From Oopsacas minuta (taxonomy: Eukaryota; Animalia; Porifera), in contig JAKMXF010000354.1 of NCBI GenBank assembly GCA_024704765.1, positions 109,690-173,689 of the forward strand: a stretch of DNA of 64,000 bases, given 5' to 3'. Positions 15,802 to 34,657 of the stretch are shown piece by piece (position 1 is the first letter of the stretch; every line of letters begins with the position of its first letter). Under the pieces are notes generated by a model that was not told where the DNA came from, made no database searches, and worked only from the letters and a program-made list of their open reading frames with translations. The translations under genes were made by a program, and so were the position numbers.

Positions 15802-16376
15802 TCTATATTATTAAATCTCAATTGTTGTCTGTTTGTTTGTCCGTTGTCAAGGAAAGGATTTATGGTATGCATTTTGAAATTGTAGCATAACTATGTATTT
15901 ATCGTGTTTATCAAGTTAGTAATAAGAATCCAACCAAGCTTCACTAAATATACCGAATATGCTGAATTCGATTTTCACACTTTTGGATTAATCATATGTA
16001 AATTTATTGTTGTTTTTATGAATATAAAGTAAACAAACTAGCCAAATCTCAAAATATACGTACAGCCTTTCTCTAACCAGCTACCCAGGGGTAACTAAAT
16101 ACGCTGAATTCGAATTTCCCATTTTCAAGTTTCTCATATGTAAATTTATTTTTTGTGTTTTTTATGAATAAAAAGTAAACAAATTACAAAATTGAAGTAG
16201 AATCATACTTTCAACGACTATACTGGTATACTCGAGTATGCTGAGTCTGAATTTTGTAAACAGCATCGATATTATTAAATCTCAATTGTTTTTTGTCTGT
16301 TTGTTTGTCAGTTGAATACCTTGAGGCGCAATGCGCCGAGTTCATCCACGAACCGACGAGCCAAAGGCTCGTATTA
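15802..16376 (+). mobile_element. Non-autonomous Helitron-like element with about 140-bp internal subrepeats
   Basis: 5' TCTATATTATTAAATCTCAATTG followed by a GTYT-type microsatellite; three GCTGAATTCG/GCTGAGTCTG-headed subrepeats; 3' hairpins GGCGCA-A-TGCGCC and ACGAGCC-AAA-GGCTCGT. Related copies at 21.4-22.3, 24.7-25.0, 28.9-30.0 and 37.1 kb. Confidence 0.6.
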
Positions 16377-17742: not shown

Positions 17743-18105
17743 TCCTATTCATACAGCAACAGCTGTGGAGTTGTGTTTTCCTGAATTTTATTTTCACTCT
17801 TACTTTCGTACATTTAATATTATTTATTGTCGATTGTTATGTCGAAGTTTAATATTTATCTATGTTTACTGGACCTGAATTACATGATTGTATTTTCAGA
17901 TTATGCATTGTATATGACACCAACGAAATCGATATTGTAAAGGTGAGGCATTAGCCAAATGATAATATCCTTCGTCCTACTAACCTTCATTCGCGATTTT
18001 TCCATCAAGTTACCTTCATTTTTAGGGGGGGGGCTAGATGAAATTGTATAACCATGAACAAATAAGATTCAGCTACTCGGTAATAGCCAGTAGAAGCTAT
18101 TACCG

Positions 18106-18377
18106 CCTTCCTCTCCTATTATAACACTCTCTAAGCCTAATGATAACTGTACTAACATTGTAATCAGCTGGACTACTCCTGATAGTGATAGATATATTAT
18201 ATTATACTCTGTGTATCGTAGTAATACATTATTAACTACTACAACAGATAATCATTACATCAGATACTAATCAGCTGACTATCAATACATAGTCAGCTGA
18301 TTAGTATCTGGTATACTGTTACAGCTATTAGCTGTGCTGGTACCTCTACTCCTGGCGTAAAGACACTCAGATTGCAA
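18106..18377 (+). pseudogene. Isolated FN3 pseudo-exon, paralogous to exons c/d of the receptor at 24-29 kb
   Basis: Translates PSSPIITLSKPNDNCTNIVISWTTPDSDRYIILYSVYRSNTLLTTTTDNHY, then a frameshift, then YTVTAISCAGTSTPGVKTLRLQ. No splice acceptor; contains a fold-back insertion. Confidence 0.8.
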
Positions 18378-18871
18378 GTGAGTCAGTCACAATTTGTTCG
18401 CTTTATCCGGAGGAAAACCAATTGATTTCTTTACATAATATATATCTAGGTTGCTAATTAGCTGCTAATCCAGACCTTTATATCAGTAATACCAATACAA
18501 GCAATGATGTATATCTTGATTGAGTAGGTTAATATTCTTTTTTTGTTTATTTTATGGTATATTTCCACCAGGGATACTCAAACTGTCATGAGGCAGAGCT
18601 ATGGCCACACTTGTCCACTTTTCCTATATAGCCAACAGAAGTATATGTTATTCCCTATATTATATGCGCAGATCATCTCCCCTTATTAGAATACAAAGTG
18701 GACAAACACAAACAATTTATAATGTAACAAACATTAATAATATTCTATAAGTAGAATGTATACAAGCTATAGGATAGGAAAGATGAACTTAGTTCTAATC
18801 TCTCAAATAAAAAATATACAAACAGGCATAATAAGAACTACGTGATGTATCGCACCTTTTGAGTTAGTTAG

Positions 18872-21332
18872 TTAAAGCGCATATACGCAACAGATAGTGA
18901 CGCAAAAACTGCAACAGATACCGCAACAGGTAATAGTGCAAATTGGAAGCCATACTAGAAGGTTTAATAGAAGAAGTAATCCTGTAACACCAATTATAAA
19001 TAGATCTAGAATATAATATAATAATAATAAATACAAACACACTTATTAACATTACAAATACACAAATACTAACATCCCAAATCAGTTCTATGAAGAAATA
19101 ATTATATAATAAATAGTATATCTTCATAATCATTTTATACAAATAAGAATAGTCTGTAATATTAATACCTGAATTTGATATTTCTGATAATTTAGGTCCA
19201 CAGTGTTCGGGACGTCCTATATAGAATTCACTGTTAAGGGGTATGTGATAATTATGATTTTGTAATTTTAAACGTTATAGAAAGGTGTAGTAATATTTGA
19301 ATTTCATGGCCGTTATATAGAGGAGGTGGCAATTAAGACAGGTGACTGATATATAAGGTAATATAGTTGAAGTAGTTAATGGTGGCAAACCAAGGGGCTT
19401 CAAATGTGGACTTGATGGGGAGGTGACAACTATATAAATTGGCCGGTATATGCAGGTTTAGTGCCAGTAAGGGACCAATAATGGTGGCCGCTATGTACAG
19501 GTGACCGTTATACAGAGGTGGCCGTTAAGTTTGACTGTATTTGACAGTATATCCATGCGAAAATGGGGGTAAAATGACCATATCACCAGGAAACTTAGAG
19601 CTAAAGCAGGCTGAAGCTCCCTACAGACATGAAATTTGAACAATTTTAGCAAACTAGATGATATTCTGCTGTTCGGATAATCGAGGATCTACTGTACTAT
19701 CCTATATAGTCATGAAATCCTTACCATTAAAACGAAAAGTTTAACTCCAGGTACAGAGCTACCTACACAACTAATAGCAGTAACAGAGTATGTGTACAGA
19801 GTATTGGCAGCTAGAGATGAGGTATCCTCTACATATACTGTACGTGTGCTTTTTGCAAGGAATATGTCATTACGATACACAGAGTATGTGCGTATAGGAC
19901 TGTCAGTAGAAGGAGTATCCCAGCTGACATCAAAGCCACAGGTATATGAAAAAACACGAAGAACTGGAGAGGATGGAACTACACAGGTACCAGAACATAG
20001 GATAGTATCCACAATGTAGTGCTGTTATATGACCATGTACTTACCGTGACGGTACACTTACCTCTCTATTATTCTATACATTATTGCTACCTATTACACC
20101 GTCATGGTAAGTAAATAGTCATAATACAGTACAAATTAGTCATCAAATATATAACAAGGCCAGTGGCAGATCCAGGGGGAGGTGATAGGAGGATATATCC
20201 CACCACAAGGATGAATTTATATAATATGGAATCGTAGTCACTTGTGATATCTATTGAAATTCCTACCAATACACTGAAATATTGGCTCAAATTGCAAAAT
20301 TCGGTTGAAACCTTGGAACTAAAGTTGTATCAAATAGGTCTTGTCGTCCAGGGGCTTAGGTACAGTTAGGGTTGCAAGATTATCAAAAGTCCAAACCCAG
20401 ACAAAATTTCGCTCCAACAATTGCGGTATGTTTTGGCATTGAACGAGGGAATAGTAGTAGGCGGATACCTACCTCTTTTCTAGGGAATATTTCACCAATT
20501 AATGTCAAGGAAAGTTATAACTTTAGCGCGCACTCATTCTAGTCAAGCATCCTTATTTAAAGCTACCCACGGCTGGATAATTACCCCTCCTCACTACCAA
20601 TTCCTGGATCCGGCGATAACTTCTGGAAGACAACAAACCTCCTATAGATATAGTATTAAAACTTGAGTTACCAGCACAGTTCATAGCTATAACAGAATAT
20701 TCATATTCTGTATCTATTTCTAGAGTAGTGTAATAGGAATATGACGAGTTAGGAGTACTATGGAAATAATCTCCATTAATAAACAATTGATACATCTGTA
20801 TAGAACTGTCAGTAGCTCCAGGTATCCATGATAGCTCTACGTTACCAGAACAAGTTGTAGAGTCAAGATTAGCTGTTAGAGAGACAGGAGGGGAAGGAGG
20901 GGCTAGAAGGAAATATAGTGTTAAATGAATAAATAAGGTTTCATAATATTTTCAACTAACCAGCTTGTTGAATATTAATAGTTTCTGTTAAAGTAATTCT
21001 GTCAGTAGAATCTCCATTAACTATATAATCGTTACTACAACCAAGTCTTAGACCATTATCAGCAAGAGTATAGGATAAAAGAGTTATTGTTCCTAACACA
21101 TTCGCCGTCTTACTAATTGGTGAATCAGCTGTTAACTTGGACAGATCAACACCTCCTTGAGAATCGACACCATTGACAATAATATCAGAAAGGGGAACAG
21201 AATTCCCAACAATAAAATTGGTAACAAGGGAGAGAAAGCTATCACCAGGATTAGGAACACTCAGGTCACAGCTGACTGTTATACTCTCTCCTGGACAAGC
21301 TAGTGCAGGATTTGAAGTTACTATACCCATAC
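18872..21332 (-). pseudogene. Ig-FN3 membrane receptor, copy 1 (damaged): Ig exon 21332-20961, FN3a 20902-20639, FN3b 19978-19725, remnant about 19205-19169, TM exon 19005-18872
   Basis: All listed full exons have AG/GT boundaries. FN3b is 254 nt (1-nt deletion near the donor relative to 258 nt in copy 2, breaking phase). Exons c, d and most of e are absent. The last exon encodes LFIIGVTGLLLLLNLLVWLPICTITCCGICCSFCVTICCVYAL*. Confidence 0.7.
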
Positions 21333-22274
21333 CTAAATAGAAATAATAAAGATTCTAATCACCGTCTGTGTAGACTAATACTATAAATAGTATAATAGTA
21401 CAGTTGTAAAATGGTTGACTTAGTCTCTCTTCTATTCGGCCACCAGTTTCAGCATACTTTGTTACTACTAAATATGTCTTGAGAGAATCTCAACCAATAT
21501 TTAAAAATTTGGATAATTTGTTTACTTTATAATCATAAAAAGAGCATAAATTTACATATGATAAATTCGGATTCAGCGTACTTGATTATCCCTATGTGTC
21601 TGTTGAGAGCAAGTCTCTACGTATATTTTGAAATTTGGATAATTTGTTTACTTTATAATCATAAAAACAACAATAACCTTACATATGATTAATTCAACTG
21701 TTTGAAAATCGGATTCAGCATGTTCGATATATTAAGTGAAGTTTTATTGAATTCTATTTACTTTTTTGATGAACACTCGATACTGCATATTACTAAATCT
21801 CAATTGTTGTTTGTTTGTTGTTTGTCCGTTGATATGTAAATATATTGTTTTATGAATAGGCTTGCTCTAAACGGCTACCTAAGGGTAACTAAGTACGCTG
21901 AATCCGAATTTCGCATTTTAAGTTTCTCATATGTAGATTTATTGTTGTTGTTATGAATATAAAGGAAACAAATTAGCAAAATCTCAAAATTTACTTAGAT
22001 ACTTGCTCTCAACGGCAACAAAGTGGGTTGATCTTACAAAATAATTCAATAATATATATGCTATATACGATATTTGTGAATTACATTGTTGCAAATATAG
22101 CTATATTTTTAATTATTACTAAAAGGGCGCCGTCAATTTGGAGAACAATGGATACCTTGAGGCGCAATGCGCCGAATTCCTCGCGAAGCGACGAGCCAAG
22201 GCTCGTACATAGTTATGGAACAATTTCAAAATTGCATAACGTAAATCCTTTCCTTGTCAACGGAGACACAAACA

Positions 22275-22306
<32 letters not shown>

Positions 22307-23250
22307 CAATTGAGATTAATAATATAGATTACTACTCACTATTATTGAAGATAATAGAAGATAGAAGTAGCAGAATATAGCACAAAACTGTACTTCTAGC
22401 AGCCATCTAGACAGAGAACAGATAAGAGCTGTTAGTATTGAATATAACAACAATTTGTCTATTCTTTACAACTTATCAGTTACCATAAGCTTTTTCAGAA
22501 TAGATTCGGTTTTTGAATGAAAAACAAAGATTCTTGAAATTTGGATTGCAGCTACGGACTTGTAGACAATTAGTCAACGCAACGGTAGAGCCGAGCGTCG
22601 TGTTACAAATACATATCAACAAAACGCGAAGGACAGAAATAACGTGAAATGGAGTGCGCTCCAAAATTGAGGAGCGCTTAATGCTCTGCTACTATGGGTG
22701 CCGGGTGGCCTTGAGTGGTGCCAACTTGGAGTATGTGATGCGAGTCCATGCGACAATTGCCTAGTGTAACTTAAATATCATGTGGCACAAATGCACAACT
22801 TGTGAGGAACGGCGAGTGGTCGTAATAACATGTTGTAATTATATTTATTCCATTATTCGAAATAAATACAGTTGAAATCGGATTATTTTGTCCATTTGAT
22901 TGCACTGCCAAAAACGACAAAACAACCCGATAGACGAATACATCAATGATGCTAATTTCTGTTAGACAAGATTATTTTTTGTAGCTAATATACCAATTAA
23001 CAATAAACTTGAAGATTACATACTGATATCCAGTGGTAACGAATATTGAACTATTCTGTTGTAACTTTGCTATTGAATTTAACAAAAACTCAAAACATCA
23101 ATATATAGCTATTACAAATACAATCAAGATGAGAGTGTATCTCTAAAACCTATTGAAATTTAATAATATGGGAGTATAGATAGTATCAGTTCTGATATGA
23201 ATATCATATGACACTACCCTACGTGAAAGTACAGAATATGTATATTCTGT
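19690..23250 (+). repeat. Segmental tandem duplication, unit 1 (pairs with about 27070-30930)
   Basis: Collinear near-identity by eye, offset 7378 bp at FN3b and 7394 bp at the Ig exon, rising to about 7680 bp after an extra Helitron-like segment in unit 2. Confidence 0.9.
21450..22328 (-). mobile_element. Nested Helitron-like composite: a plus-strand copy (about 21785-22212) inside a minus-strand copy
   Basis: Minus-strand A|TCTATATTATTAATCTC start at 22328 followed by (GACA)7 on the plus strand. The inner copy ends with a GAGCC/GGCTC hairpin plus ACATAG|T at 22212. Reverse-oriented subrepeats (TCGGATTCAGC) at 21.5-21.7 kb. Confidence 0.55.
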
Positions 23251-23848
23251 ACTAACTATGAGGCGTGCTGGTACTCTGAACAACTTTCTCTACGTCATAA
23301 TTATCATTAGGCTATGTAAAGTAATATACTTGTTTCTCATCCCTCCCGCCCCAAACCGGAAGATTTTATTTCTATTATTTCCAAATTTATGGATAATTCT
23401 TTGATCACACAGTGTGCAATCCTCATTTTTCTAGTTGTATAGTTGAAAAATTCAATATTTTAATGCCCAGAGAGAATGTGGCGTGATATCGAAGGGTCAA
23501 AATGTGTTATATATTCACTGGCCAATAAAAAATAAAGATAAATACCGCCCGCCATGGCAGTTTCCGAAGAAATTCCGGGTGAGAAACAAGTAATTAATTT
23601 TACATGGACTAATAGTATCAATCTTAGTCATCTGTATACTGACTATTGTTAGAGTGATAATGTACAAGAAACTGAAGTCTACTAACATACAGAACCACCA
23701 CACAAACATGAGTATATACTATATAGATATAGTTCCTGTATCTCCTGGTAGAACAGCTGATCCCTTTTACACATGTATGGACCCTGAAGGTACACATTCT
23801 AGTTCTCATGAGTCTGTTAAAACTCCTCCGTATTCTAGCTTGAAGTGA
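22985..23848 (+). pseudogene. Decayed plus-strand receptor relic: FN3 fragment plus TM and cytoplasmic-tail exon (23594-23848)
   Basis: About 23205-23310 reads YDTTLRESTEYVYSVLTMRRAGT, homologous to FN3a YYTTLEIDTEYEYSVIAMNCAGN. 23594-23848 reads LILHGLIVSILVICILTIVRVIMYKKLK...IYYIDI...FYTCM...PPYSSLK*. No clean acceptor before the TM exon. Confidence 0.55.
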
Positions 23849-24115
23849 AGTGTAGATTCATTTATTTGTTTACTACGTTGTATATATCGTTTTTAGCGAA
23901 TCTATTAGTATATTTGTTGTTTAAAAGGGTAAGATCATATATTCGATAAACAAACAATAAAGTAACAAATATTATTAAGATTCTATAAATAGCATGGATA
24001 AAAACTATAGGATAGGAAAGATGAATTTAAATAGTTCAAATAATAAAATATACACTCAGGATAGGACAGGATAGGAGCTAGTAGTATATCACACCTTATT
24101 AGTTAGTTATGAGAG

Positions 24116-27100
24116 CTAGGTTAATAATACTAATAGAAATCCTCCTATAACACCAGCTACATATGGAGCTAAAATAGAATAATAATAATAATAATAAATA
24201 CGCACAAACAAACTTATTAACATTACAAATACACAAATACTAACATACCCGAACCAGTTTCTATGAAAGAAATAATGATATAATAAATAATACGTATATA
24301 CATAAGTAACATAATCAATAAAGGTATGAACTTACGCCTATTGTGTAATACTGTAGAATAAAGTAAATAAAATCATAACTCATTAGATACAAATAACAAT
24401 ACTTAGTATGTAATATGTATACCTGAATCATAATCCATACATATTGATGGTCCTCCACATTGTGATATTCGTAGACAAGCTGTAATCTCTGTATTGACAG
24501 TACCTGTAATAAAGTTATGAGGAGTTATAGCCAAACTATAGGTAGTGTCAGTAGAGAGCTGTGAGAATACATATGTTTCAGAGAACTGCCAAATGTCGCC
24601 TTGAGAATAAGAATAGTCCAGATGAAGTGAGTAGGTGAGTAGGAGGATAGGATTGCTTTCTGTATTCGTGTCGAGAGTCTAAAAATTGTATGATAGGGTA
24701 GATCTATATTATTAAATCTTAATTGTTGTCTGTCTGTCTGTTTGTCAGTTGTCAAGGAAAGGATTTACTGTAAGCAATTTTGAAATTGTCCCATAACTAT
24801 GTATTTATCGTGTTTATCAAGGAAGTTAATAGAATTCATTAAAACTTAACTAAATATAGAACATGCTGAATCCGAGTTTATGTACTCGAGGACCGTAGGC
24901 CCGAGTGTGGACACGAAGTGTTTGCAACCGCGTAGCACGAGCAAGCGAAACGTCCTCGTACTAGAAAGCTCAATTAATCTATGCGTATATATACATATTT
25001 GAATATGTTCGTATCTTCGGAATTGATTGAAGAAACTGGAGGACCCCCAGGACAGATTTTTGGCATACGAGGGTATTTCTGGCCTGGCTCGGACTATTTC
25101 GAGTCTTGAACAAAAAATTACACCAATGACGAAATTATGACGTAATTCACCTTTTGGGATTTTCAAAATATCACATTATTAGCTACTACTCAGCCACTAT
25201 TTATGCTTTAAAATATGAATCACAGGTACCCCCCTCAATATGCCGAATGTTCTGACGGTATGCTCGAAACACAAATTACACATATACTACCCAAATGCGA
25301 CATAGCAGCTCAGGTATTACCACAGAAAGCTATTGAATGGAATTTGGATGGGTCATAGATAAAATAATTTAAAATGTCCACAAAAATTAACCTCGAGGTA
25401 CGAGGTGCGAAGTAGCGAGCTTAGAGCACCCAAAAATGTAACTGTTTAATAGCTAAGCTAACCTGATACACTAAGCTGTTGCGCAGCGACCTAGCAAGGG
25501 AAGCGGGCTAGTATTACACAACGCCGAGAATATTGAAATACTAAAATTAATGGCTAATATATAAAAAGGAACTTACCCATGTAATATTAGTTCCAATATT
25601 AGTTTCGTCATAGCTGAGAGAAATATTATTGAAAGATAATGAATATTCTGGGATGTTTGTATAGATAACATCAGAAGTAGAGGTACCAGCACAGCTTCTA
25701 GCCGTAACAGAGTACTGATATACTGTATTGATAGTTAGCTGATCAGTATCTTTGTACTGTTTATCTGTTGTAGTAGTTAATAATGTATTATCACGATACA
25801 CAGAGTATTCTATAATATCTCTATCACTATCAGGGGTAGTCCAGCTGATCAGAATGTTAGCACAGTTAATATCAGGCTCAGAGAGTGTGACAATAGGACG
25901 AGAAGGAGCTACAAAATAAATAGTAAATAATTATCACTAATCAGTAAATTACTAATTATCAGAAATAAACAAATCTATATCAAATCAGCGTCTGTGCCAA
26001 CTAAAATTTTACCAAATAAATTTCTGTGGATTATTGAACTGTACTATTCTGCTAATATACATTTTAGAAAAGAAAGATAATTTGAATTTTACTAATCTTG
26101 TTAGAGATTTTAAAATGTTAAAATTGAATTCTCCGTCCCAGTTTACCCTCTTTAACAAGTGGAAGCTAATCTATAGGATAATATTGAAATGTTCACTAAA
26201 AGGTGTGATTAATCATATGATAAATGTGTACCCTACCCTGACAAAAATTCATCAATATCCAAAATTTCCACACAAATAAAGGAATAGTTGGTCTATTCTT
26301 GATGTCAATACAGTAAAAGAGTACTATTCAAAGGGTATTTGCTAATAAATTCGCTATCCATGTATTATGATAGAAAAGTTTCTAAGAATTCTATGAAATA
26401 CACGGTAATAAGTTGCATAATTTCCAACTCTGTGTACTTAGTGAAACCTATCACCTTATATCTTAATAATTTTAACCACTTTCAAAAACATAGATGTATA
26501 TTTATAGATAGTCAACCAATTTTAAAACTGAGCCCCTATACTATAAAATAGTATTCGTCGGCACGGTAAATATATTATCGTCCTTCATATAATCTCACCT
26601 CTAACAATAAAATTATTAACACCAGGAGTAGAGGTACCAGCACAGCTGCTAGCCGTAACAGAGTACTGATGCACTGTATTGATAGTCAGCTGAATAGTAT
26701 CTGTGTACTGATTGTCTGCTGTAATAATTAAAGGATTATCATTACGATACACAGAGTAAAATATAATATCTCTATCACTATCAGTAGTCCAGCTGATTAG
26801 GATGTTAGAACAGATATTATCAGGCTCAAAGAGTGTTACAATAGGAGAAGAAGGAGCTACAAATATATAGTAACTAAAGTAAACTCGTTATAACGAAGTG
26901 CTCGGGACCTCCGTTTCAATTCGTTATAAGCGGAATTTCGTTGCATCGATCTATCATTTCGTTATAAACTAAGGTTTTCTAACAATTAGATGGAAGGATT
27001 TACGGACCATTGGACTACTTAATCATAAGCGTGTTTCGTTGCATCCGACTGGGTAATAACGCGAGTCTACTGTACTATCCTATATAGTCATGAAATCCTT

Positions 27101-28726
27101 ACCATTAATACTAAGAGTTATAACTCCAGGTACAGAGCTTCCTACACAACTAATAGCATAAACAGAGTATGTGTACGAAGTATTGATAGCTAAAGGTGTA
27201 GCATCTGTATACTCTGTGTTAGTTGGATTAGCTAGGAGGTTGTCATCACGATACACAGAGTATGAAAGAATAGGTCTGTCAGTAGAAGGAGTATCCCAGC
27301 TGATACCAAAGCTAAGACAGACAGGAACCTGAAAAACATCAAGAACTGGAGAGGATGGAACTACACAGGTACCAGAACATAGGATAGAATCCACAATGTA
27401 GTGCTGTTATATGACCATTTACTTACCATGACGGTACACTTACCTCTCTCTATTATTCTATACATTATTGCTACCTATTACACCGTCATGGGAAGTAAAT
27501 AGTCATAATACAGTACAAATTAGTCATCAAATATATAACAAGGCCAGTGGCAGATCCAGGGGGAGGTGATAGGAGGATATATCCCACCACAAGGATGAAT
27601 TTATATAATATGGAATCGTAGTCACTTGTGATATCTATTGTAATTCCTACCAATACACTGAAATATTGGCACAAATTGCAAAATTCGGTTGAAACCTTGG
27701 AACTAAAGTTGTATCAAATTGGTCTTGTTGTCCAGGGGCTTAGGTACAGCTAGGGTTGCAAGATTATCAAAAGTCCAAACCCAGACAAAATTTCGCTCCA
27801 ACAATTGCGGTATGTTTTTGGCATTGAACGAGGGAATAGTAGGCGGATACCTATCGCTTTTCCAGGATATGTTTCACCAATTAATGTCAAGGAAAGTTAT
27901 AACTTTAGCGCGCACTCATTCTAGTCAAGCATCCTTATTTAAAGCTACCCACGGCTGGATAATTACCCCTCCTCACTACCAATTCCTGGATCCGGCGATA
28001 ACTTCTGGAAGACAACAAACCTCCTATAGATATTGTATTAGCTGTGTAGGTAAATTTTGAGTTACCAGCACAGTTCATAGCTATAACAGAATATTCATAT
28101 TCTGTATCTATTTCTAGAGTAGTGTAATAAGAATATGATGTGCTAGGAGTACTATGGAAATAATCTCCATTAATAAACAAATGATACATCTGTATAGATC
28201 TGTCAGTAGCTCCAGGTATCCATGATAGCTCTACATTACCAGAACAAGTTGTAGAGTCAAGATTAGCTGTTAGAGAGACAGGAGGGGAAGGAGGGGCTAG
28301 AAGGAAATATAGTGTTAAATGAATAAATAAGGTTTCATAATATTTTCAACTAACCAGCTTGTTGAATAATAATGGTTTCTGTTAAAGTAGTTCTGTCAGT
28401 AGAATCTCCATTAACTATATAATCGTTACTACAACCAAGTCTTAGACCATTATCAGCAAGAGTATAGGATAAAAGAGTTATTGTTCCTAACACATTCGCC
28501 GTATTACTAATTGGTGAATCAGCTGTTAACTTGGACAGATCAACACCTCCTTGAAAACCGACACCATTGACAATAATATCAGAAAGGGGAACAGAATTCC
28601 CAACAATAAAATTGGTAACAAGGGAGAGAAAGCTATCACCAGGATTAGGAACACTCAGGTCACAGCTGACTGTTATACTCTCTCCTGGACAAGCTAGTGC
28701 AGGATCTGAAGTTACTATACCCATAC
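24116..28726 (-). CDS. Ig-like + 4 FN3 + fifth FN3-like domain cell-surface protein, copy 2 (apparently intact, 5' exon not found). Exons 28726-28355, 28296-28021, 27360-27103, 26856-26599, 25908-25577, 24678-24423, (24350-24336), 24168-24116
   Basis: Manual splicing at AG/GT sites gives about 600 codons without a stop. Phases 1-1,1-1,1-1,1-1,1-0,0-1,(1-1),1-stop are all compatible. Ig pattern PGESITVSC...TITLLSYTLADNGLRLGC; FN3 patterns P..P...SW......Y.VY......L...T.Y.YSV.A. C-terminal hydrophobic tail PYVAGVIGGFLLVLLT*. Confidence 0.8.
24703..24964 (+). mobile_element. Short Helitron-like element in the receptor intron, 24 bp from a splice acceptor
   Basis: A|TCTATATTATTAAATC start, GTCT repeats, imperfect terminal hairpin ACGAG...CTCGT and CTAG end. 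Confidence 0.6.
25981..26107 (+). repeat. Dispersed repeat, inverted copy at about 52183-52310
   Basis: caaatcagcgtctgtgcc(a/g)actaaaattttaccaaataaatttctgtggattattgaactgtactattctgctaata is present in both places. Confidence 0.75.
26877..27072. mobile_element. CAGT-type MITE in the intron after FN3b
   Basis: (a)AGTAAACTCGTTAT ... ATAACGCGAGTCTACTG|TA; same family as 36559-36708 (shared aacgaagtgctcgggacc). Confidence 0.55.
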
Positions 28727-29947
28727 CTAAATAGAAATAATAAAGATTCAAATCACCATCTGTGTAGACTAATACTATAAATAGTATAATAGTACAGTTG
28801 TAAAATGGTTGATTAGTCTCTCTTCTATTCGGCCACCAGTTTCAGCATACTTTGTTACTACTAAATATGTCTTGAGAGAATCTCAACCAATATTTAAAAA
28901 TTTGGATAATTTGTTTACTTTATAATCATAAAAACAACAATAACCTTACATATGATTAATTCAACAGTTTGAAAATCGGATTCAGCATGTTCGATATATT
29001 AAGTGAAGTTTTATTGAATTCTATTTACTTTTTTGATGAACACTCGATACTGCATATTACTAAATCTCAATTGTTGTCTATTTGTTTGTCTGTTGTCAAG
29101 GAAAGGATTTACGGTATGCAATTTTGAAATTGTCGCATAACTATGCATTTATCGTGATTATCAAGGAAGTAAATACGTAGAATTCAATAAAACTTCACTA
29201 AAATATATTAGAACATACTGAATTCGATTTCTCACTTTGGATTAATCATATCTAAATTTATTGTTGTCTTTATGGATATAAAGCAAGGTTGCAACCGAAT
29301 AGTTCAATATTCGGTATTCGGTTAAGCAACTATTCATGAATACTGATATTCAGTTTGATCGGTTTCAACCTTGATACAAAGTATACAAATTTCAAAATTG
29401 TTGTAGAAACATGCTTTCAATGGTTATGCTGAGTCTGAGTATGGTATTGTAAACAACATCTATATTATTATATCTCAATTGTTGTCTGTTTGGTGTTTGT
29501 CCGTTGATATGTAAATATATTGTTTTATGAATAGGCTTGCTATAAACGGCTACCCAAGGGTAACTAAGTACGCTGAATCCGAATTTCGCATTTTAAGTTT
29601 CTCATATGTAGATTTATTGTTGTTGTTATGAATATAAAGGAAACAAATTAGCAAAATCTCAAAATTTACTTAGATACTTGCTCTCAACGGCAACAAAGTG
29701 GGTTGATCTTACAAAATAATTCAATAATATATATGCTATATACGATATTTGTGAATTACATTGTTGCAAATATAGCTATATTTTTAATTATTACTAAAAG
29801 GGCGCCGTCAATTTGGAGAACAATGGATACCTTGAGGCGCAATGCGCCGAATTCCTCGCGAAGCGACGAGCCAAAGGCTCGTACATAGTTATGGAACAAT
29901 TTCAAAATTGCATAACGTAAATCCTTTCCTTGTCAACGGAGACACAA

Positions 29948-29987
<40 letters not shown>

Positions 29988-30930
29988 CAATTGAGATTAA
30001 TAATATAGATTACTACTCACTATTATTGAAGATAATAGAAGATAGAAGTAGCAGAATATAGCACAAAACTGTACTTCTAGCAGCCATCTAGACAGAGAAC
30101 AGATAAGAGCTGTTAGTATTGAATATAACAACAATTTGTCTATTCTTTACAACTTATCAGTTACCATAAGCTTTTTCAGAATAGATTCGGTTTTTGAATG
30201 GAAAATAGAGATTCTTGAAATTTGGATTGCAGCTACGGACTTGTTGACAATTAGTCAACGCAACGGTAGAGCCGAGCGTCGTGTTACAATTACATATCAA
30301 CAAAACACGAAGGACAGAAATAATGTGATTGAAGTGCGCTCCAAAATTGAGGAGCGCTTAATGCCCTGCTACTATGGGTGCCCGGTGGCCTTGAGTGGTG
30401 CGAACTTGGAGCATGTGATGCGAGTCCATACGACAATTGCCTAGTGTAATCTAAATATCATGTGGCACAAATGCACAACTTGTGAGGAACGACGGGTGGT
30501 CGTAATAACATGTAATTATATTTATTCGATTATTCGAAATAAATACAGTTGAAATCGGATTATTTTGTCCATTTGATTGCTACCAAAAACTACAAAATAA
30601 CCCAATAGATGCTAATTTCTGTTAGACAAGATTATTTTTTGTAGCTAATATACCAATTGACAATAAACTTGAAGATTACATACTGATATACAGTGGTAAC
30701 TGAATATTGAACTATTCTGTTGTAACTTTGCTATTGAATTTAACAAAAACTGAAAATATCAATATATAGCTATTATAAATGCAATCAAGATGAGAGTGTA
30801 TCTCTAAAACCTATTGAAATTTAATAATATGGGAGTATAGATAGTATCAGTTCTGATATGAATATCATATGACACTACCCTACATGGAAATACAGAATAT
30901 GTATATTCTATAGCTATAAGTTCGTGCTGG
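27070..30930 (+). repeat. Segmental tandem duplication, unit 2
   Basis: See unit 1. Carries an extra about 420-bp Helitron-like segment (about 29050-29470) between direct repeats of atattatta(a/t)atctcaattgttgt, and (GACA)8 versus (GACA)7. Confidence 0.9.
28850..30009 (-). mobile_element. Nested Helitron-like composite, longer version of 21450-22328
   Basis: Same termini, hairpins and subrepeats; minus-strand A|TC start at 30009. Confidence 0.55.
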
Positions 30931-31455
30931 TAACTCTATTAACACAATAGCTGATCCTATAACTTCTGGAGGTTTTTTGTATATTTTCTGTTGAAAAATT
31001 TTCAATGAGAGCAATAAATGATCTCATTTGGCTCCTTCCTCTCGTATTGTGACACTCTCTAAGCCTAATGATAACTGTACTAACATTGTATCAGTTGGAC
31101 TACTCCTGATAGTGATAGATATATTATATTATACTCTGTATATCGTAGTAATACATTATTAACTACTACAATAGATAATTATAATCATTATATCAGATAC
31201 TAATCAGCTGACAATCAGCAGGGCCGTAAGAGCTGGTACGGCAGGTACGGCGCTCGCGCACCAATGATTCAGAATTTCTATTACTATTAATGGTCATATG
31301 TAATGAATGCCGCACCAACACAATGTACCTAGCCGTACCAATAATTATTTGCTTCCTACGTCCCTGTGATCAATACAGTATATCAGTACACTGTTACAGC
31401 TATTAGCTGTGCTGGTACCTCTACTCCTGGTGTTCTAAGACACTCACATTGCAAG
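30790..31455 (+). pseudogene. Plus-strand receptor relic: FN3a-like fragment (to 30971), 60-bp intron, FN3c-like pseudo-exon (31032-31455)
   Basis: YDTTLHGNTEYVYS..IA..CAGNSINTIADPITSG|gt, then PSSRIVTLSKPNDNCTNI...YSV...YTVTAISCAGTSTPG with frameshifts, a mutated acceptor (tttgg) and a MITE insertion. Confidence 0.75.
31219..31366. mobile_element. 148-bp hAT-like MITE inserted in the FN3 pseudo-exon
   Basis: CAGGGCCGTA...TACGTCCCTG termini and subterminal GGTACGGC/GCCGTACC; absent from the paralogous exons. No clean TSD visible. Confidence 0.6.
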
Positions 31456-32030: not shown

Positions 32031-34657
32031 CACTACGTAACACAATTTTTGTTTGGCTTCAATTTTTGATGTTCCCTTATGCTTTTTGCGTCGCTGAATT
32101 CAAAAATCGTGTTAGTTTTTCCATATCATCAATGCTTTTTGACGTATTTACACTTTTTGCTTTTTCCGAACAAGTTGTGTTGTTCATTATATGCAAATTT
32201 ACCTACAGCTCTTGTAATAGATTTAAACACGTAGTGATGTGTTGATAAGTTAATTTGAACATGAAAATCATTACCAAACAGTACATTGCTGATTACAAGT
32301 CCTAAAGAAAACAAAACGCACTCATGTTAGAGAGTTAAAATACTTCAAAAATGAACTGTTGAACGAGCTTTCTTTTGTGACCAGAAATGTCTTCCCTTAT
32401 CAAAAACCACATGTAATCGCCCATCATTGCACTGTCCCAGCGGCCCTGATACCGTCTTTCCATTAGCTGAATATCTTGGTGAAATCTCTCGCCATGTTCC
32501 TCGCTGAAATCCCCCAAATTTTCTTGAAAGAAGTCAAGATGAGAGCATAGAAAATGAAGTTTCAACGACATGCGACATCCCATCTTTTGGTAGCTTGTGA
32601 TCAGAGTATTCACTATCTCTTCATAATTAGGATCTTTGTTATTTCCTAAAAAGCCATTAACTACATCACGAAATGCCTGCCATGCTTTTCTTTCTGTTTC
32701 GGTCATTTTACCCTCCAGGGTTCTTGACTTTAACATGGTGGTTATTTGGGGGCCAACAAATATTCCTCCCTTTAGTTTAGCATCTGATAATTTTGGAAAC
32801 ATTGCACGGATTTCTTGAAAAGCTTCTCCTTCAAAATCCAAAGCTTTAACAAATTGCTTTACTAAACCTAGTTTTATATGAAGAGGTGGTAGTAAAACTT
32901 TTTCCCGGCATACAAGTGGCTCTTTGATGACATTGTACTTTCCTGGCATTAATTCTTTTCTTGGCGGCCATTGAATCTTCGAGTAGTGCTCTCCATCAGC
33001 TCTGCTGTTCCACAAACAAAGAAAACATGAGTATTTGGTGTAACCACCCTGCAGTCCCAACAAAAACCCCAACATCTTAAAATCACCACAGAGCTGCCAG
33101 TTAAATTCAGCATAGTTTATTTTAAGCAGTAGTTGCTTGACATTTTCATAGTCTTCTTTCATTTGTATTGAATAAGCAAGTGGAATTGACGGATATTTGT
33201 TCCCATTATGAAGTAAAACTCCTTTAAGACTTTTGGTGGAACTGTCAATAAAAAGTCGCCACTGAGAAGGGTCATGTTCAATTCCAACAGCATCAAACAA
33301 ACCATTCACATCTTTGCAATAGCACAGATCCTGTATTACATCAAAGTAAACAGAATAGTCCAAGTGCCTCTTCCTGTAAGCAGTTATTTTGCAATCATCA
33401 CGCAGCAAATTCCACTCGCTTAATCTTGACGTCAATAGCTCTGCTGCAGATTTTGTTAGTTGCAGATCTCGTATTAAGTCATCTAATTCTCTCTTAGAAG
33501 GATAATGACGATCTGCACTTGTTGATTGGAGATACTCCTCCTCAGCATCCGAAGTTTCACTTGATATCGAGTCTTCACATTCAGTATTAAACTCCAACTA
33601 AAATGACAAGAATAAAACACAAGATGCAGATTGTGGGTCACCCTTACAGCATATAAGCTAGCGTAGCCTTATATTATAAAACATAAAACTACTTACATTT
33701 GCTGGTGGTTTTGGAACTGGTAAAGTTTCACTATGAGGAACAGGTGCAATGGATGATGGTATACTTGGATAAGTCAGTGCTCTTCTTCCCTTAACCTTGC
33801 GGTACTTAGCAATATTTACCATACAAAAGTAACAATCATCATGATGGTTTTGTGGCTCTCTCCAAACTCTTGGAATAGCAAATGGCATAACTCTAGCGGA
33901 ACCCCTCAACCAAGCTTCAAGATTAGATCGACAGCTGCCACAAATCACATGTGGGGCCCAGGCCTTTTCCTGATCCCCAATGGACATCCCAAAATACAGT
34001 CTATACGCTTCCCAATACTTAGCTTCTTTTGATATTTTATTTGAAACATGTTTGTCACCAACATAATATCCACAAACATAGCAAAATGAGTCAGGTGAAT
34101 TCTTGCATTGTCTACTAGCCATTGCAATTTCTAAATTTGAAAAACACTAACTTAACGTAAGAACAACCAGCAAGTTATTTCTGCCTCTCTGCTAAAGGCA
34201 GTTATACTTATGCTTATACTAGCTGCTGGTAGCTTATAGTATTAATATAAGTAAATACTTTCCAAGTGAAGGTACTGAATAGCAAATAAACCATACGCAA
34301 GAACGAAATTTCTAAGTTTTGCAATCCTACCCCAGCCTGGAATTCTGATGCTGTTTAAGCTGTGCATTCGCAGACACTTTAAGTGTCTCCCAGAGCTTAA
34401 AAAGACAAGAGACAGTGAAGGGAGTGCAAAATGTTTGTTATCTTTATTGTTATAGCACAAAAGATTTTGATTGTGACGTACGTTTTTGCTGGGTTGGCTA
34501 AGCGTGTAACCTGCTCATATAAATAGGCTTCCTGAAAGCTAACGATCGATGATAGAAAAAAACTAATTGTATTTTCGGAATCAGCGCCTCAAAATTATCC
34601 ATAAACAATCAAAATATCAAGCCAAACAAAGATTTCATAAAAATTTGTTACGTAGTG
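32031..34657 (-). mobile_element. Full-length Chapaev3-type (CMC superfamily) DNA transposon
   Basis: TTA|CACTACGTAACA ... TGTTACGTAGTG|TTA: perfect 12-bp TIR, about 110 bp of imperfect subterminal similarity, 3-bp TTA duplication. CAC...GTG ends with a TWA TSD are characteristic of Chapaev3. Confidence 0.85.
32335..34122 (-). CDS. Chapaev-type DDE transposase, 562 aa; exons 34122-33697 and 33597-32335
   Basis: A 99-bp phase-0 GT..AG intron joins the Cys-rich N-terminus (CKNSPDSFCYVCG, PHVIC..C, HHDDCYFC) to the catalytic core (FIDSS, CGDFK, PPLHIKLG, EHGERFHQ) with no stop. Confidence 0.88.

Follow-up and report, generated by a model that had tools for sequence, protein, structure and literature searches.

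We analyzed a 64,000-nucleotide (nt) stretch of the genome of the glass sponge Oopsacas minuta (assembly GCA_024704765.1, contig JAKMXF010000354.1, positions 109,690 to 173,689 of the forward strand), referred to here as the window; the source assembly comprises 61.46 Mb in 365 contigs with ∼36% G+C. Two tandem genes, A and B, lie on the minus strand of the window and, from the look of their predicted products, would be of surface-receptor type. They share a block that is 98-99% identical, within which one exon, encoding a fibronectin type III domain (FN3b), is a mosaic of strongly diverged islands and near-identical blocks. The 3′ parts of the two genes are far more diverged than the block, the block itself is uneven in age, no donor for the islands is present in the assembly, and the two FN3b exons are each other's sisters. 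The explanation to which we lean, with slightly less than even confidence, is a known pattern, namely concerted evolution of old tandem duplicates that has left islands of divergence. The original prediction, made from the letters of the window, had instead read the contrast as exchange of FN3 cassettes with other paralogues.

Divergence between the two copies is concentrated in the FN3b exon

Self-comparison and MAFFT alignment revealed one near-identical direct repeat in the window (19688-23277 versus 27066-30937, both on the minus strand). Between A and B, the first ectodomain exon differs by 7 substitutions in 372 nt (6 of them amino-acid changes), a 58-nt intron by none (0/58), the FN3a exon by 10 in 264 plus a 12-nt indel, with a small cluster of substitutions at 20736-20749, and the 660-nt intron at 20638-19979 by 15 in 657 (97.7% identical). 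The FN3b exon (19978-19725 versus 27360-27103) carries 52 substitutions in 251 aligned positions (79% identical) and 10 gap columns, a substitution load far above that of its upstream intron (Fisher P ∼1e-18). Its first 20 nt are the same in both copies, and so are the 37 nt past the exon (0/37; 19688..19724, minus strand), where homology stops abruptly at 19688/27066. Amino-acid identity over the exon alignment is 63%, six codons differ by a synonymous change only, and the Nei-Gojobori proportions of synonymous (pS) and nonsynonymous (pN) differences are both 0.23. These values reproduce the manual counts on which the original prediction was built (7 differences in 372 nt, 1 synonymous, for the exon that it labeled immunoglobulin [Ig]; an upstream intron of 660 bp at ∼97% identity; identical sequence over the first ∼20 nt of FN3b and the 37 bp after it; and an FN3b exon at ∼78% nucleotide and ∼60% amino-acid identity with in-frame indels and at least six synonymous changes). 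Its further claim that the 3′ end of FN3a had been replaced held as far as a local difference is concerned, but that difference amounts to three substitutions and the loss of 12 nt from copy A, not to a replacement; the 12-nt change is read as a deletion in A because relatives on contigs C360 and C317 carry the long form of FN3a, as B does. Divergence is uneven along the length of the block (4.5%, 0.3%, 1.0%, 1.9%, 3.8% and 2.3%, the extremes being 4.5% at 23250-22521 and 0.3% at 22520-21880), as would be expected from several conversion tracts of different ages.

The FN3b exon encodes a true FN3 domain, as judged from Pfam scores at threshold (fn3, PF00041: A, 24.9 bits; B, 25.9 bits; cut-off, 25), a confident AlphaFold model of the B exon (predicted local distance difference test [pLDDT] of 92, seven strands) and Foldseek template-modeling (TM) scores of 0.74-0.84 between that model and solved FN3 domains. 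A word-indexed protein database held no match for the open reading frame (ORF) of the A exon, and exact-product look-ups with both exon ORFs returned no record. The Ig label of the first ectodomain exon is unconfirmed: it has no Pfam match, its AlphaFold pLDDT is 30, and its feature matches to Ig clusters of the ESM Atlas are weak (0.87-0.88 at most).

Within FN3b, differences are clustered (permutation P = 0.001) into three islands, V1 to V3, and the exon tail (Table 1). In the tail, B resembles the tails of the family and A does not. The blocks between the islands are 94-100% identical between A and B and as short as 17-29 nt, and they include the peptides PSSPVL, SWDTPSTD, YSVYR and YTYSV.AISCVGSSVPGV. 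Placed on the FN3 model, V1 would run from the end of strand A through the A-B turn into the start of strand B, V2 from the last part of the BC loop into the start of strand C, and V3 from the C-C′ turn through strand C′, the C′-E loop and strand E to the E-F loop, with the exon tail corresponding to strand G. The conserved blocks would then take in strands C and F, the FG loop, and the end of strand B together with the greater part of the BC loop. When the islands are pooled, differences affect each codon position about equally often (19, 13 and 15 of 40). Among codons that specify the same amino acid in both copies, 5 synonymous changes fall in 12.6 sites within the islands and 1 in 28.6 sites within the conserved blocks (P = 0.007). 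Conserved blocks are not shielded from synonymous change, since in block C3 (F strand and FG loop) B and its relative on contig C64 differ at 5 of 13 codons with unchanged amino acid (manual count). The concentration of synonymous changes in the islands therefore shows that the ancestry is mosaic, and selection on amino acids alone is insufficient to account for it. This bears out two claims of the original prediction, that the core of the exon has a different and deeper ancestry than its flanks and that positive selection by itself cannot explain the synonymous excess. On the evidence of these alignments, the identity of A and B in the conserved blocks is recent, and the islands are older or foreign.

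Age of the duplication and decay of copy A

Genes A and B are collinear in their 3′ parts, at an identity of only 76-82%, introns and downstream sequence included (A 19174-18710 versus B 24428-23948). The duplication must thus be far older than the 98-99% identical block, and with A and B as old duplicates it is the near-identical block that needs explaining. Homology ends 37 nt after FN3b, exactly where A is without FN3c, FN3d and most of the stalk exon of B; past this point, copy A carries repeat-rich sequence. Copy A is structurally degraded, with the 12-nt FN3a deletion, a frame-breaking 1-nt deletion in FN3b and several exons missing. Relaxed constraint by itself is insufficient to produce divergence on this scale that is restricted to one exon.

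Search for a donor

DNA searches of the whole 61-Mb assembly with either FN3b exon found no donor: besides A and B themselves, the matches were short conserved motifs or FN3 exons with 66-69% identity. In protein searches of the assembly, A and B were mutually nearest (71-72% identity), and all other FN3 exons reached at most 51%. A donor elsewhere in the assembly is thereby rejected. Genes related to A and B occur at C360:88547-90754, C64:38327-39507, C317:223964-224899 and 239978-240663, and C63:10461-11174 (contig:positions); they vary in the number of FN3 exons (a first domain, none to two FN3a, FN3d and a stalk), the DNA identity of their FN3d-type exon between contigs is 83-94%, and, among them, the FN3b type is found only in A and B. 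Against FN3d-type exons (FN3c, FN3d and those of contigs C64, C317, C360 and C63), V3 is 44-51% identical in A and 53-61% in B, while the two longest conserved blocks of A and B, C1 and C3, are only ∼65-78% identical to the same exons. Two loci of pseudo-exons on the opposite strand of the window (Table 1) are, like FN3c and FN3d, of an FN3 subtype other than FN3b. Pseudo-exons, FN3c and FN3d are accordingly out as donors (44-61% identical to A or B in V3), and the suggestion that the pseudo-exons served as a donor library is not upheld, as they resemble the islands of neither copy.

In maximum-likelihood trees A and B came out as sisters whether the conserved blocks (support 97) or the islands (support 100) were used, so that there is no discordance between the two partitions. 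A Sawyer-type runs test, similar to GENECONV, found no shared fragment in 21 pairs (lowest P = 0.045). A k-mer search of the window for a local template yielded longest shared words of 10-12 nt, which is chance level, and local templated mutation is rejected on that ground. The genome-wide FN3 comparison, the GENECONV-type test and the per-exon trees had all been put forward with the original prediction as ways to detect exchange. Every one of these tests speaks against exchange with a paralogue in the assembly: A has its nearest relative in B and B in A, the runs test is negative and the trees agree, which leaves the import of FN3 cassettes from paralogues unsupported.

Variants in contigs of public runs

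Evidence from reads was taken from Logan contigs of four public runs (X1 to X4) that are recorded as one sample. Such contigs show presence, not absence, and letters near contig ends may go uncounted. As De Bruijn contigs, they may also switch copies wherever at least 31 nt are shared (for example, the 35-mer at A 19072-19040 and B 24244-24212), so that A-type and B-type letters cannot be phased. The four runs contain only 39-59% of the 31-mers of the window. In three runs, near-perfect overlapping contigs bridge the tandem layout (23041-23343, 23314-23542, 23442-24032 and 23580-24241), and the A-unique 3′ region is likewise present in three runs. A 1944-nt contig of X1 matches A from 21531 to exactly 19688 and then continues with 80 unmatched letters, as copy B should.

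The two sites at which A and B differ in conserved block C3 (19761 and 19780) are polymorphic between runs, X4 having the A letters and X1 the B letters, and contigs of X2 and X3 with the B-like exon have ∼2 times the depth of the unique flanks; together, the C3 polymorphism and the doubled depth hint at ongoing exchange. Run X4 also contains a B-like V3 17-mer with two amino-acid changes that is absent from the assembly. A contig of X1 is A-like over 18634-19040, with 17 of its 18 differences lying within 74 nt (18926-18999) of the membrane-helix exon of gene A; this variant, also absent from the assembly, encodes a different helix with an earlier stop and shares 18 consecutive nt with gene B. 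The locus is therefore polymorphic and patchwork variants exist, the additional V3 and membrane-helix variants coming from contigs of runs that are probably from different adults. As side observations, the X1 variant repeats the exon-confined pattern in a second exon, and at 21162, 21167 and 21293 in the first ectodomain exon several runs have variants that match neither A nor B. In the published Oopsacas minuta genome, each library was made from a different adult (PMC10280926).

Weighing the explanations

Under concerted evolution, A and B would be old tandem duplicates of one surface-receptor gene whose 5′ parts have been homogenized by conversion, as far as the site at which the downstream exons of copy A were lost. 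Three segments of FN3b and the exon tail would have escaped homogenization in the assembled haplotype, to stand as islands on a young background; they may have persisted through selection for a different surface, through rejection of heteroduplexes over dense mismatches and indels, or simply as an unconverted allele. The direction of conversion would then be that the flanks were converted, not that the core was imported, and homogenization of the flanks between old duplicates fits at least as well as import of the core. Several observations nonetheless weigh against this account. Of the island changes that can be polarized against FN3d-type exons, 24 are derived in A and 10 in B (13 undecided), and at third codon positions the figures are 10 and 3. 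In the island tree the A branch is 0.55 substitutions per site long and the B branch 0.027, and the islands are 33-45% diverged (raw), compared with 18-24% in the unconverted 3′ parts, although few sites enter either comparison. Since retained old divergence would give symmetric branches, the excess on A argues against simple retention. The FN3b exon of A also has a 1-nt deletion near its 3′ end that leaves 254 nt, breaks the 1-1 phase symmetry and loses the frame into the next exon; with the exon out of frame, selection preserving the islands of A is hard to argue. The identical blocks of 17-29 nt between islands would require conversion to be very short or patchy. Finally, the A-type letters at 19928 and 20046 were not found among the differences listed for the contigs of the four runs (presence-only data), and the assembly appears to mix individuals.

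If locus A was once B-like, the islands could alternatively be several small patches that conversion brought in from a diverged copy or allele of FN3b type, one that the assembly does not contain. This is the less probable account, though one to be taken seriously: it would accommodate an island divergence that exceeds that of the old paralogues and falls mostly on the A branch, third codon positions included, and unassembled variants do exist, namely the V3 17-mer of X4 and the membrane-helix exon of X1. Exon shuffling with neighboring pseudogenes is reported for Hydractinia Alr2 (PMC8282982). However, 61 Mb of assembly hold no donor, the island and conserved-block trees agree, and a single tract would have replaced the conserved blocks too, so that three to four micro-tracts, or a donor with identical blocks, would be needed. 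We think it improbable that the A and B cores are alleles or copy-number variants of different adults, one of which was threaded into each locus by the hybrid assembly, which would make the difference between paralogues in part a difference between individuals, even though the low share of window 31-mers in the runs, the A letters missing at 19928 and 20046 and the disagreement of runs at A/B-diagnostic sites are what such mixing would produce. Set against it are the three-run bridging of the tandem layout, the A-unique 3′ region in three runs, the position of the A-type tail within ∼60 nt of A-unique sequence, inside one 99-mer (the largest k of the published assembler), and the FN3-like open frame of the A-type core, which argues for real biological sequence and not sequencing error. 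A tandem of haplotypes created by the assembly is, as a full explanation, unlikely for the related reason that contigs of three runs bridge the region upstream of A into the 3′ end of B. Least probable of all, in our view, is a local burst after a recent duplication, through strong diversifying selection or targeted error-prone mutation on the A-B, C-C′-E and G parts of the domain. The equal spread over codon positions, pN close to pS in the islands, the concentration of changes on one lineage and the placement of the islands on adjoining strands and loops of an FN3 model of high confidence would all suit such a burst; it would, however, have to place ∼47 substitutions and three indel events in ∼120 nt while the adjoining introns gained 2%, hit synonymous sites as often as nonsynonymous ones and act on a copy that is out of frame, and the runs contain few variants, not many. 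Without strong separation, we rank patchy escape from conversion combined with fast change on A first, import from an unassembled donor next and an unusual local mutation process last.

A broader possibility, which we consider doubtful, is that A and B belong to a polymorphic family of recognition-type receptors of glass sponges in which germline swapping of short segments of domain exons generates patchwork alleles like those of cnidarian allorecognition genes. With no greater probability, the swapping might take place among alleles and copies that include some missing from the reference, and might affect FN3b and perhaps the membrane-helix exon.

Gene models and neighboring features

Gene models (Table 1) rest on open frames, on the phases of splice sites and on related loci used for comparison. 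The predicted products would begin with a signal peptide and a first domain of no assigned class, continue through FN3a and FN3b (and, in B alone, additional FN3 exons) and finish with a stalk and a membrane anchor. In gene A the stalk remnant ends at 19171, and the exon at 19007-18874, which runs to the stop, encodes a membrane helix and a Cys-rich tail. Depth in run X4 is 10-20 times greater on exons than on introns, a profile that looks like RNA. One X4 contig joins 19978 to 20639 with GT..AG ends on the minus strand, and a loose end at 19007 resumes at 19171, so that both the FN3a-FN3b splice and the last intron of gene A are backed by apparent RNA. X4 depth is also high at 24400-24599, in the region of the 3′ exons of gene B. 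There, a contig of the same run goes past the donor of the B stalk exon at 24423 by 15 letters, which have no match in the window and one match in the genome, at control or chance level; this tail may stem from an allele or from an alternative 3′ exon that was not assembled. The ends of the two genes are not alike: B stops straight after a hydrophobic stretch of 17 residues (24118-24171) that resembles a glycosylphosphatidylinositol (GPI) signal or a tail-less anchor, and A (18874-19007) has a helix followed by a Cys-rich tail (CCGICCSFCVTICC).

Table 1. Positions of the features of genes A and B and of the FN3 pseudo-exons, counted from the first letter of the window
Feature	Position	Strand	Remarks
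Copy A, near-identical block	19688..23277	-	From the 5′ region to 37 nt past the FN3b exon; self-comparison, MAFFT
Copy B, near-identical block	27066..30937	-	Self-comparison, MAFFT
Predicted signal-peptide exon, gene A (MAARSTVLCYILLLLSSIIFNN)	22341..22406	-	Inferred from ORF and phase-1 GTGAGT donor
Predicted signal-peptide exon, gene B	30022-30087	-	Identical to that of A
First ectodomain exon, gene A	20961..21332	-	372 nt; "Ig" exon of the original prediction
First ectodomain exon, gene B	28355-28726	-	
FN3a exon, gene A	20639..20902	-	264 nt
FN3a exon, gene B	28021-28296	-	276 nt
FN3b exon, gene A	19725..19978	-	254 nt, no multiple of 3
FN3b exon, gene B	27103..27360	-	258 nt, phase 1-1
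Island V1, copy A	19926..19958	-	55% identical to B 27302-27340; 6-nt indel
Island V2, copy A	19886..19900	-	67% identical to B 27262-27276
Island V3, copy A	19796..19872	-	62% identical to B 27175-27248; 3-nt indel
Exon tail, copy A	19725..19745	-	Three substitutions and a 1-nt deletion
3′ exons, gene A	18874..19231	-	Small stalk remnant, intron 19170-19008, last exon
B-only exons	23948..26856	-	Splice sites and phases mutually consistent
FN3c, gene B only	26856-26599	-	
FN3d, gene B only	25908-25577	-	
Stalk exon, gene B	24678-24423	-	
Short hydrophobic C-terminal exon, gene B	near 24171-24118	-	
FN3d-type pseudo-exon	18097..18377	+	Opposite strand; 13-nt insertion; unlike islands of A or B
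FN3a-type and FN3d-type pseudo-exons	30837..31437	+	Opposite strand; FN3d part split by ∼150-nt insertion; unlike islands of A or B

A poorly aligned transposon-like repeat lies within copy A (21568-21786). The repeat family of the first intron, probably a transposon (21568-21825, 28872-29460 and 15802-16192), differs in arrangement between A and B and is covered to very high depth in every run, and a second dispersed repeat (18634-18715) has at least 40 copies in the genome. Just beyond gene B, at 32338-34146 on the minus strand, two long open frames of 420 and 162 amino acids have a transposase-like look.

Comparison with known systems

In the chicken, immunoglobulin genes are diversified by somatic gene conversion from pseudogene V segments, with an upstream array that matches the converted patches and with many variants per animal. 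The locus described here has in common with that system only the notion of templated patches in an otherwise constant gene; somatic change, an upstream pseudogene array matching the patches and many variants per animal were not seen in the assembly and the contigs of the four runs, and the analogy drawn in the original prediction fails on every feature that can be tested. We know of no description of a variable self/non-self receptor from a glass sponge. Homogenized introns next to sharply bounded hypervariable stretches mark selection or unusual exchange acting on the ectodomain, and if population data gave many patchwork alleles, the locus would become a candidate recognition locus in a syncytial animal. 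It also serves as a warning, in that the assembly appears to mix individuals.

In the Hydractinia allorecognition gene Alr2, domain exons are reported to be shuffled between alleles and adjacent pseudogenes (PMC8282982, citing Gloria-Soria 2012). Alr2 and the A/B pair are alike in being invertebrate surface receptors with one domain per exon and neighboring broken copies, and in having patchwork alleles with variation focused in parts of one domain. However, the donors of Alr2 are identified and many of its alleles sampled, whereas here no matching donor was found in the assembly and the pseudo-exons are of another FN3 type.

A divergence peak of the opsin type, known from exon 5 of the primate red and green opsins and treated in the Teshima-Innan model (PMC3924837), and the "islands of divergence" of the same kind between copepod GOT1 paralogues (PMC3728101) share more with the FN3b exon. 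In each case conversion holds old tandem duplicates close to identity, one exon differs more between the copies than the introns do, and the peak is sharp and centered on that exon. The peak described here is unlike those of opsin and GOT1 in being split into three islands by identical blocks of 17-29 nt, and in exceeding the divergence of the unconverted 3′ parts, mainly on one copy that is out of frame. As it stands, the locus clearly illustrates a pattern that is already known, the peak of divergence under gene conversion; by strength of evidence the opsin-type peak is its nearest known case, and Alr2 is the nearest in flavor.

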